Source: Macrostomum lignano (lineage: Eukaryota). From it: a DNA stretch of 64,000 nt. Below, piece after piece: positions 45,560 through 47,919 of this stretch. The notes below the pieces were generated by a model. It was not told the DNA's origin. It did no database searches and saw only the letters and a program-made list of their open reading frames with translations. Numbering within the stretch: the stretch's first letter is position 1; each line of letters starts with the position of its first letter. Where the stretch lies: assembly GCA_002269645.1 (NCBI GenBank), contig NIVC01002233.1:1-64000 (forward strand), read 5' to 3'. The translations under genes were made by a program, and so were the position numbers.

Positions 45560-47663
45560 CTAAGCGCTGAGTCCACAGCCGGTGGCAGCAGCGGGCAGCC
45601 GCGAGCAGGTGAGCACGCCAGCCCAGCCTGGGGGTGTCGGGGGTGCAGCCTCGCTCGGACAGCGGTAGGTGGCCTGCCGGAACACAGGCTGCCTGTCGGC
45701 CAGCTGGAACCGCAGTCCGGGGCCGGTGAACAGCCGCTGACTTGCCAGATTATCGTCGCCAATCTTTGCCAGCAGCTGGCCAGGCTGAGCACCCAGCGCT
45801 TCGGACAGGTAGGCAATCAAGCACTGGACAGCCTCGCGGCCCAGGCCCCTGCCTCTGTAGGCCGGTTCGGCTATCATCACTTCGAGTTCGAACTCGCGAC
45901 CTTCGCGAACAACCTCCTCGTTGTCTTGGTTGTCCTCTTCGACGGCTCTGATGTTGGGAATTAAAAACGAATTCACGTCGCCAATCATTGCCGCCAACTC
46001 CGCTGCCGGCTGGCGTTGCCATGGCAACGAAGCTGACTCTTTGTTGGACGCCTGGCGGATAAACAGGAATGAAAGACGCGGCTGCCGTTTAAAACATGCA
46101 CGAGTCCCGATTTCCAGTATACTAATTAAAGATTACATAGAAGATTGTTGGCGATAGTATGACTAACCGCGGCCAATTCTGCTTAACTTTGCATGCTTCT
46201 GCACTTACAGCAGCTAAGGCGTCTCCACACTCCTTACCGCAGCTGGACCCCACACCCCTGACCGCAGCTGGACCCCACACCCCTGACCGCAGCTAGACCC
46301 AACACCCCTGACCGCAGCTGGACCCCACACCCCTGACCGCAGCTGGACCCAACACCCCTGACCGCAGCTGGACCGGACCCCACACCCCTGACCGCAGCTG
46401 GACCCCACACCCCTGACCGGAGCTGGACCCAACACCCCTGACCGCAGCTGGACCCCACACCCATTACCGCAGCTGGACCCCACACCCCTGACCGCAGCTG
46501 GACCCCACACCCCTGACCGCAGCTGGACCCCACACCCCTGACCGCAGCTGGACCCCACACCCATTACCGCAGCTGGACCCCACACCACTGACCGCAGCTG
46601 GACCCCACACCACTGACCGCAGCTGGACCCCACACCCCTGACCGCAGCTGGACCCCACACCCCTGACCGCAGCTGGACCCCACACCCCTGACCGCAGCTG
46701 GACCCCACACCCCTGACCGCAGCTGGACCCCACACCCCTGACCGCAGCTGGACCCCACACCTATTAACGCAGCTGGTCCCCATAAGCGCAAAGAATCCAC
46801 TTACCGGCACTTTAGACCCCATAGCGGATTCCAGAGTGTCTCTGTGCAGCACAATAAAGGTCAACTTGTCGTCTGAATTGCGCCAACTACGCTGCATTTC
46901 GAACTCTTCCTGTCAAGGACCGGGTACAGTCATAGAGGGTAAGGAGGGTAAATCATTGTGGAGAATCTTTCCTGATAATAGGCGGGTACAGTCATAGAGG
47001 GTAATGAGGGTAAATCATTGTGGAGAATCTTTCCTGATAATAGGCGGGTACAGTCATAGAGGGTAATGAGGGTAAATCATTGTGGAGAATCTTTCCTGAT
47101 AATAGGCGGGTACAGTCATAGAGGGTAATGAGGGTAAATCATTGTGGAGAATCTTTCCTGATAATAGGCGGGTACAGTCATAGAGGGTAATGAGGGTAAA
47201 TCATTGTGGAGAATCTTTCCTGATAATAGGCGGGTACAGTCATAGATGGTAAGGAGGGTAAATCATTGTGGAGAATCTTTCCTGATAATAGGCGGGTATG
47301 GTCATAGAGGGTAATGAGGGTAAATCATTGTGGAGAATCTTTCCTGATAATAGGCGGGTACGGTCATAGAGGGTAATGAGGGTAAATCATTGTGGAGAAT
47401 CTTTCCTGACAATAGGCGGGTACGGTCATAGAGGGCGAATAATCTTCATCTCGATCTCTAGCAGTCGGCAATAACGCAGTTACAAATACCGGCCGGATAA
47501 TGAAAACTGAACAGCTCACCTCTAGGCTAAGAGGCTCTGACGCCGTGGCCTCCAATATATCAGGCTGCAGCATCCACTGGTGGTAGCGGGTCACGTGATA
47601 AGCTTCATACGGCACCAGCACGAGAGACTGGCTAACGCAGTAGGAGAATTCATTTAATCTCAT
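45560..47663 (-). CDS. NAT9: N-acetyltransferase 9 (GNAT, microtubule-associated NAT9), 3 exons (47663-47520, 46909-46805, 46051-45560), 246 aa
   Basis: MRLNE...LVLVPY..YHV.RYHQWM...[13 protein letters not shown]|EEFEMQRSW...DDKLTFIVL; MIGDVN; [19 protein letters not shown]; AKIG.DN.AS..LF. Both introns are phase 0 with GTGAGC and GTAAGT donors. Confidence 0.95.
46232..46780. repeat. 25-bp minisatellite (CCGCAGCTGGACCCCACACCCCTGA), about 21 copies, in NAT9 intron 2
   Basis: Direct tandem repeats. Confidence 0.96.
46921..47434. repeat. 62-bp minisatellite, about 8 copies, in NAT9 intron 1
   Basis: Unit GGCGGGTACAGTCATAGAGGGTAATGAGGGTAAATCATTGTGGAGAATCTTTCCTGATAATA. Confidence 0.96.
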
Positions 47664-47823
47664 TTTGCTGCTGCTGCTGCAGACGCCTCTGACGTCTGGC
47701 TTCTTCTAACTCGACTGGCAGGTCAGACAGGGGCTTGAAGAAGCGGTGCACGAGCTCCGAGCCTACAGCCGCCGATGCCAAGAATACTGCTGTGAATTTG
47801 ACAAACTGCCAGGTGGATCCCAT
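47650..47823 (-). CDS. UQCC6: BRAWNIN/UQCC6 (C12orf73, DUF4516)-like mitochondrial microprotein, 57 aa, overlapping the NAT9 start by 14 nt
   Basis: [57 protein letters not shown]. The single TM followed by G(S/A)E.VHR(F/Y)(F/Y)(K/R)P....P matches human BRAWNIN AMCAGAEVVHRYYRPDLTIP as recalled. Absent from the ORF track because it is under 60 aa. Confidence 0.85.
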
Positions 47824-47919
47824 GCGGAATTATGCGGCACCGCCTGACTGCTAGCGAGCTGTCACTGAGTCAGCTGGTCTGTCAGGCAGCAATTGGCCAG
47901 GTTGGGCAGCTGCTAATGA

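Follow-up and report, generated by a model that had tools for sequence, protein, structure and literature searches.

We analysed a 64,000-nucleotide (nt) stretch of the genome of the flatworm Macrostomum lignano (assembly GCA_002269645.1, Mlig_3_7, contig NIVC01002233.1, positions 1 to 64,000 of the forward strand; hereafter the window), in which a 57-codon open reading frame (ORF) on the minus strand runs into the start codon of the gene for alpha/beta-tubulin N-acetyltransferase 9 (NAT9). Judged by its sequence, this ORF is a real and unannotated gene of the BRAWNIN/UQCC6 (DUF4516) family, whose known members are single-pass peptides of the inner mitochondrial membrane needed for assembly of respiratory complex III (vertebrate BRAWNIN, fly Sloth2; PMC9681215). 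The microprotein ORF and the NAT9 ORF overlap within a single exon, and the explanation we favour, and consider probable, is that one bicistronic BRAWNIN–NAT9 mRNA would yield both proteins, with NAT9 being reached by ribosomes that scan past the first start codon. The pairing is not unique to M. lignano: it recurs, with the same layout of start codons, on two contigs from other organisms.

The microprotein ORF and its overlap with NAT9

Kinship with DUF4516 had been proposed in a first-pass annotation made from the letters of this DNA, and is borne out by profile and protein searches. Against Pfam DUF4516 (PF14990) the 57-residue product scores 28.0 bits (E = 1.7e-6), a borderline result in that the cut-off of 27 is exceeded by 1 bit only; the variant encoded at a paralogous M. 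lignano locus (L003, see below) scores 27.1 bits. A separate profile, built from 112 BRAWNIN/UQCC6 proteins of species other than M. lignano, was run against all 1950 open segments in the six frames of the window and gave a sole match, at 47829-47653 on the minus strand (40.6 bits, E = 2.4e-11), the runner-up segment having E = 1.8. Relatives recovered by profile search are named BRAWNIN, UQCC6 or C12orf73 homolog, with identities of up to 45% (Drosophila); phmmer against 1.84 billion representative proteins returned P0127 and P0128 as the only real matches, both with a precomputed PF14990 assignment; and tblastn of the window with two DUF4516 proteins finds the ORF at E = 1.6e-10 and 3.2e-10. 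The peptide also has the form of the family, namely 57 residues with an N-terminal hydrophobic helix followed by the motif G..VH.[FY][FY].P...[LI]P. Its hydropathy peak, at residues 10-26, coincides in position with that of relatives, and G21, V25, H26, P31 and P36 are invariant in the alignment with them.

Other searches returned nothing: tblastn with a human BRAWNIN query, under default statistics, did not detect the ORF; among 5.8 billion indexed protein clusters none shares three 5-residue words with it; and public assemblies gave no exact-sequence match to the ORF or to UniRef model P0001. The GenBank annotation calls no gene between the upstream nuclear-receptor gene and NAT9, which, taken with the word search, means that the ORF is unannotated, the fate that had been foreseen for it at the hands of gene predictors.

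The downstream gene is NAT9, as the first-pass annotation had taken it to be. Its three coding exons (Table 1) assemble into a protein of 246 amino acids (aa) identical to M. lignano PAA59764.1, which matches Pfam Acetyltransf_3 (PF13302, GNAT) with 47.7 bits and has 684 homologues, the named ones being called NAT9 or alpha/beta-tubulin N-acetyltransferase 9; the M-R-x-N N-terminus is conserved in NAT9 of other species. The description of the junction given earlier matches the sequence base for base: the NAT9 ATG at 47663 is embedded in the terminal microprotein codons, which read AAT GAG ATT AAA TGA on the minus strand. The NAT9 frame is +1 relative to the microprotein ORF, whose stop falls 11 nt past the NAT9 start. 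The in-frame TAA just 5′ of the first start codon (AUG1; that of NAT9 is AUG2) leaves AUG1 as the only possible genomic start of the microprotein, and the TAG in the NAT9 frame excludes both an N-terminally extended NAT9 and a simple read-through fusion. The ORF and the NAT9 start codon lie in the same exon, NAT9 coding exon 1. Because the overlap falls within one exon, an mRNA that contains the whole microprotein ORF also carries the NAT9 start, and with normal splicing it would carry the whole NAT9 ORF, that is, it would be bicistronic.

Table 1. Positions, in the window, of the two reading frames and of the elements around them.
Feature	Position	Strand	Details
BRAWNIN/UQCC6-like (DUF4516) ORF	47650..47823	-	ATG 47823, TGA 47652-47650; 57 codons plus stop; unannotated
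AUG1 of BRAWNIN-like ORF	47821..47823	-	context ttccgcAUGg: C at -3, G at +4
ORF overlap	47650..47663	-	14 nt, AUGAGAUUAAAUGA; from NAT9 start codon 47663-47661 to BRAWNIN stop 47652-47650
In-frame TAA, BRAWNIN frame	47832-47830	-	two codons 5′ of AUG1
Putative 5′ leader	47824..47924	-	from the end of the (TATC)n microsatellite to AUG1
TAG, NAT9 frame	47706..47708	-	14 codons 5′ of AUG2
NAT9 coding exon 1	47520..47663	-	48 codons, MRLNEFSY...SLE; donor GT 47519-47518; tblastn and gene model
NAT9 coding exon 2	46805..46909	-	35 codons; tblastn and gene model
NAT9 coding exon 3	45560..46051	-	stop TAG 45562-45560; tblastn and gene model
(ATAG/TATC)n microsatellite	47920..48696	.	about 198 copies; bounds the leader on its 5′ side

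Existing gene models offer weak transcript evidence for a shared mRNA. The NAT9 coding sequence (CDS) in GenBank is flagged as complete, not 5′-partial, and in three earlier UniRef gene models the NAT9 exon takes in 42-116 nt of upstream ORF sequence. UniRef models A0A1I8INA9 and A0A1I8HTF9 start at the codon right after the TAG at 47708-47706; A0A1I8GFE2 (P0125) starts with FVKF, directly 3′ of a CAG at 47806, and, by omitting 47710-47689, runs from the BRAWNIN frame into that of NAT9. The identifiers Mlig032180, Mlig019531 and Mlig022367 are not listed in the supplements of Wudarski 2017 and Grudniewska 2018. We rejected the reading of '.g2' in Mlig019531g2 as the second gene of a transcriptional unit: the nuclear-receptor copies Mlig008902g1 and Mlig008902g2 lie on different contigs, which implies that the '.gN' suffix numbers paralogous copies.

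Constraint on the peptide can be followed among three paralogous genomic loci in M. lignano, L001 (the window copy, identical over 22 kb to contig NIVC01002233.1), L002 and L003. The ORF is open at all of them, so that the disrupted frame which the first-pass annotation had named as telling against its own reading is found in none (0/3); the changes amount to one synonymous substitution, one V-to-I replacement and one in-frame CAG insertion. Two substitutions in 320 aligned ORF sites compare with 11 in 202 leader sites (Fisher P = 8e-4), and divergence among the paralogues is 0.6% in the ORF, 5-6% in the leader, about 3% in intron 1 and 1.6% in the NAT9 CDS. The extra CAG of L003 sits in the Q tract of the microprotein and, read in the NAT9 frame as in the UniRef models, inserts a Ser. 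A CCAAT box in the leader was considered as a promoter marker and dropped, as it is only a 5-mer and is mutated in L003.

Recurrence of the pairing and layout of the start codons

Two short contigs, L007 and L008, bear the NAT9 relatives closest in percent identity to that of M. lignano, and each has a DUF4516 ORF directly upstream. That of L007 (44.9 bits) ends 22 nt 5′ of an intronless NAT9, and that of L008 (DRR639838; 39.9 bits) ends 12 nt 5′ of an intronless NAT9. The source of L007 is a reef-coral sample of Tara Pacific, sequenced as a PacBio HiFi metagenome (run ERR14224704; PMC13083261), and L007 is therefore genomic DNA, most likely that of the cnidarian host. The NAT9 proteins of L007 and L008 share 76% identity; their identity to scallop NAT9, the closest named relative, is about 55%, and to NAT9 of M. 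lignano 44%. Between these contigs the BRAWNIN ORF shows non-synonymous divergence (pN) of 0.21 versus synonymous divergence (pS) of 0.72, with a pN of 0.16 for NAT9 and pS values of about 0.72-0.76 for the two ORFs; on these estimates the upstream peptide is under purifying selection about as strong as that on NAT9. At 243-255 of L007 an acceptor-like TTTGCAG motif stands 4 nt 5′ of the BRAWNIN AUG, with several ATGs further 5′, which suggests that the mature 5′ end is perhaps made by splicing there.

No SMIM4/UPF0640-like sequence, the partner of BRAWNIN in the canonical bicistron, has a match in the 64-kb window, at L001 to L003 or on L007 and L008. In two positive controls, L004 and L005, UPF0640 ORFs (77.6 and 96.6 bits) end 20 and 16 nt 5′ of DUF4516 ORFs. 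The canonical SMIM4–BRAWNIN bicistron, seen in these two other organisms, is thus not what occupies the M. lignano locus, and the first-pass annotation was right to give BRAWNIN a different partner here. The control loci, at 5704-6201 of L004 (a metagenome contig) and 5639-6274 of L005 (a Logan contig), are themselves unannotated SMIM4–BRAWNIN bicistrons in which a short intron interrupts the SMIM4 ORF.

A suboptimal AUG1, a better AUG2 and no AUG between them are found in M. lignano and on both NAT9-linked contigs (Table 2). In M. lignano the context of AUG2 is agcaaaAUGa, which agrees with the strong context (CAAA-AUG) read there before, and in the window copy AUG1 is the sole ATG, in all frames, from 47935 down to 47664, so that the leader and the stretch between the starts are as free of AUGs as had been claimed. 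Scanning 40S subunits would reach AUG1 first and, given its C at -3, some of them would initiate there and make BRAWNIN; the remaining subunits would traverse 157 nt without an AUG in any frame and would then initiate at the NAT9 AUG, with its A at -3.

Table 2. Start-codon layout in the three NAT9-linked lineages.
Property	M. lignano	L007	L008
AUG1, base at -3	C	C	T
AUG2, base at -3	A	A	G
ATGs between the two starts	0	0	0
Shuffle P of no ATG between the starts	0.111	0.032	0.094
Internal Met in BRAWNIN peptide	0	0	0

The lack of an ATG between the M. lignano starts is mildly unusual (shuffle P = 0.11, or 0.03 with the leader included), and the product of the three P values in Table 2 is about 3e-4. 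Internal Met residues are missing from the peptide, as the first-pass annotation had pointed out, and the Met-free state is found in 0 of 112 other family members even when N-terminal extensions are trimmed, these being mostly proteins of mammals and flies, so that independent contrasts number fewer than 112. Missing out-of-frame ATGs were dropped as separate evidence, since they are expected (P = 0.75) given a Met-free peptide. Leaky scanning predicts depletion of AUGs in the upstream cistron and neither reinitiation nor separate transcripts do, for which reason leaky scanning is the mechanism we favour.

Whether the arrangement is also old is a more doubtful matter. We offer only tentatively, and would sooner question than assert, that BRAWNIN–NAT9 is an old conserved dicistronic gene common to a flatworm and a cnidarian-like lineage, coupled by leaky scanning, and not a one-off rearrangement. 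If it were so, either there would be a link between NAT9 and mitochondria that has so far gone unrecognised, or BRAWNIN would persist only by sharing the mRNA of a host gene, SMIM4 or NAT9 according to lineage.

Weighing the alternatives

Several observations weigh against leaky scanning on a bicistronic mRNA, or narrow it, in addition to the slender Pfam margin and the composition of the comparison set given above. AUG1 has a G at +4, which strengthens it, so that by Kozak's rules its context reads as weak to moderate; the earlier description of this context as weak stands as regards the pyrimidine at -3, and the context is not maximally weak. The putative leader of L003 (L003 9772-9810) has an ATG 66 nt 5′ of AUG1, opening a 12-codon upstream ORF (uORF; MSDRPADSVTAR), from which it follows that the leader is either under 66 nt long or not AUG-free in every copy; the leader of L002 has no ATG. 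The pairing is absent, moreover, in scallop (10 kb of flank), in the trematode Paragonimus and at 80 metagenomic NAT9 loci.

The first-pass annotation took no account of spliced-leader (SL) trans-splicing, to which about 30% of M. lignano genes are subject (PMC8629364), the leader being 35 nt long and ending in AUG and the acceptor motif being YTNCAG (PMC8629364; PMC5730564). BRAWNIN might thus be made from a long mRNA and most NAT9 from a shorter one, whose 5′ end would come from an internal promoter or from SL trans-splicing within or beyond the upstream ORF, in which case leaky scanning would contribute little, although the two could coexist; we regard this as unlikely, while giving it serious weight. 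A CTGCAG acceptor motif at 47682-47677 lies inside the microprotein ORF, with the first exon base at 47676, 13 nt 5′ of the NAT9 AUG, and makes a NAT9-only isoform possible; the CDS of the neighbouring adenylate kinase gene is annotated as starting right at a TTTCAG acceptor, so that trans-splicing is probably active in this neighbourhood; and the UniRef models start just after AG dinucleotides, at 47805 and 47705. A start after AG cannot, however, be told apart here from a start after the stop codon TAG, and the chance expectation for a single 6-mer acceptor motif in that stretch is about 0.6. Splicing at 47676 would moreover put the leader AUG in the BRAWNIN frame, creating a 9-codon uORF that overlaps the NAT9 AUG, so that bypass of an AUG would still be required. 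Separate isoforms also leave unexplained the Met-free and AUG-free upstream ORF and the weak-then-strong contexts of three lineages, and the completeness flag of the GenBank NAT9 CDS suggests that the transcript model extends past 47706. The SL sequence and Rfam families were sought in the window and none was found. An SL ending in ATG would be in frame with BRAWNIN if spliced at 47805, and in frame with NAT9 if spliced at 47705.

Overlapping or abutting stop–start sites are classic places for coupled translation and are used as such by some viral cassettes, and the stop–start proximity at these loci (the 14-nt overlap in M. lignano and the spacers of 22 and 12 nt on L007 and L008) could be taken as a sign of termination–reinitiation, with the 40S subunit backing up 11 nt to the NAT9 AUG after the UGA at 47652-47650. 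Unless helped by a dedicated element, eukaryotic reinitiation becomes steeply less frequent once the preceding ORF exceeds about 30 codons; the BRAWNIN-like ORF, at 57 codons, is above that length, no search having been made for such an element. Nor would reinitiation select against AUGs in the upstream ORF, yet all three lineages are without them, and the stop–start geometry varies between overlap and spacer. We consider this route improbable. Still less probable, in our judgement, is that the upstream ORF is a mere translational brake on NAT9 and its peptide a decaying BRAWNIN relic, with a functional copy elsewhere in the genome. A Pfam score barely past the cut-off and the frequent repression of downstream ORFs by uORFs (PMC9681215) would suit that view; against it, conserved family positions are retained, the changes among paralogues are only synonymous, conservative or in-frame, and the peptide of L007 and L008 bears the mark of purifying selection. 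We attach hardly any credence to a BRAWNIN–NAT9 fusion protein, as modelled in UniRef A0A1I8GFE2, made by removal of the 22-nt GT..AG piece 47710-47689. That model reads ...SDLPVE and then continues in the NAT9 frame, joined exactly at GT and AG, but 0 of 3 genomic copies have the 22-nt deletion, the junction is missing from the later RNA-seq-guided GenBank annotation, and stop codons separate the two ORFs in both L007 and L008. A length of 22 nt is, to our knowledge, below that of known animal spliceosomal introns, and the most likely origin of the junction is a gene-prediction artefact that mends the frame.

Genomic neighbourhood and relation to known systems

The NAT9 locus is dense in tandem repeats, whose array lengths vary among the three paralogues. 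Intron 1 is filled by a 62-nt minisatellite (46921-47435, 8.3 copies), intron 2 has a 25-nt minisatellite (46225-46782, 22 copies), a 40-nt array (45000-45532, 13.4 copies) lies just 3′ of the NAT9 stop, and a further repeat is listed at 49055-49500. The adenylate kinase gene at 36331-37050 on the minus strand (L001 20614-21333) has a CDS without an ATG (PDMTVEG...) right after its TTTCAG acceptor, as expected if the spliced leader supplies the start codon. The nuclear-receptor (zf-C4) gene PAA59765.1, at 51212-53324 on the minus strand (L001 4340-6452), is flagged as partial, and its CDS starts right after a TAA, 6 nt 3′ of an acceptor-like TTGCAG motif. Two observations concern NAT9 in other species. 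At 316-842 of L006, from Paragonimus skrjabini miyazakii, RPS25 ends 98 nt 5′ of a same-strand NAT9 and there is no DUF4516 ORF; this proximity may reflect an operon. In P0002, a 334-aa NAT9-like isoform X1 of Ixodes scapularis, the first ~107 residues are repeated, with MRTNAKTEVWSEH at residues 1 and 138, probably through a duplication in assembly or annotation.

The BRAWNIN family, the concept of a bicistronic microprotein gene and the leaky-scanning mechanism are already known; what is new is that BRAWNIN forms the upstream, overlapping cistron, that its partner is NAT9 and that the pairing recurs. A literature search found no paper that joins NAT9 with BRAWNIN, UQCC6, C12orf73 or DUF4516, or with bicistronic genes or uORFs. 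With this ORF the gene set of a regeneration model gains a conserved assembly factor of the respiratory chain, and the locus suggests that a conserved microprotein can exchange one bicistronic partner for another (SMIM4 in flies, sea squirt, lamprey and choanoflagellates, NAT9 here) while the translation solution is kept. It would also provide a natural comparative test of leaky scanning, in that loss of Met and AUG is seen in each NAT9-linked lineage and in no other family member. For annotation the lesson is that 5′ untranslated regions (5′UTRs) should be screened with microprotein-family profiles, one earlier annotation having produced a chimeric NAT9 model. We know of no functional link between BRAWNIN and NAT9; if the pairing is ancient, a connection of NAT9 with mitochondrial function becomes testable.

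Among known systems, the SL trans-spliced operons of M. lignano itself (PMC8629364, PMC5730564) resemble the locus in that a single promoter serves two unrelated genes, as it would for BRAWNIN and NAT9. Operon genes lie about 100 nt or more apart and are resolved into monocistronic mRNAs, whereas the BRAWNIN and NAT9 ORFs overlap, so that no intercistronic acceptor can part them without truncating BRAWNIN; the only YTNCAG motif, that at 47682-47677, lies inside the upstream ORF. The polycistronic uORF mitochondrial microproteins of human, as described in PMC13303939, similarly place a small conserved protein in the annotated 5′UTR of a larger one, both presumably being translated, but they belong to different families, and several of the human pairs are functionally linked. 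From the AUGA/UAAUG stop–start cassettes of viruses and fungi the locus differs in its AUG-free upstream ORF and its contrast of contexts, which suggest leaky scanning, and in a geometry that is not kept in L007 and L008.

The closest likeness is to sloth1/sloth2 of Drosophila (Bosch et al. 2022, PMC9681215), where leaky scanning has been tested by reporters. Sloth2 belongs to the same family, being BRAWNIN/UQCC6; two conserved ORFs nearly abut, the fly spacer being 5 nt on one transcript; and a suboptimal first AUG (ACACAUG in the fly) is followed by CAAAAUG at the second. In M. lignano, by contrast, BRAWNIN is the upstream cistron and not the downstream one, its partner is the unrelated 246-aa enzyme NAT9 in place of the paralogous microprotein SMIM4, and the two ORFs overlap by 14 nt.

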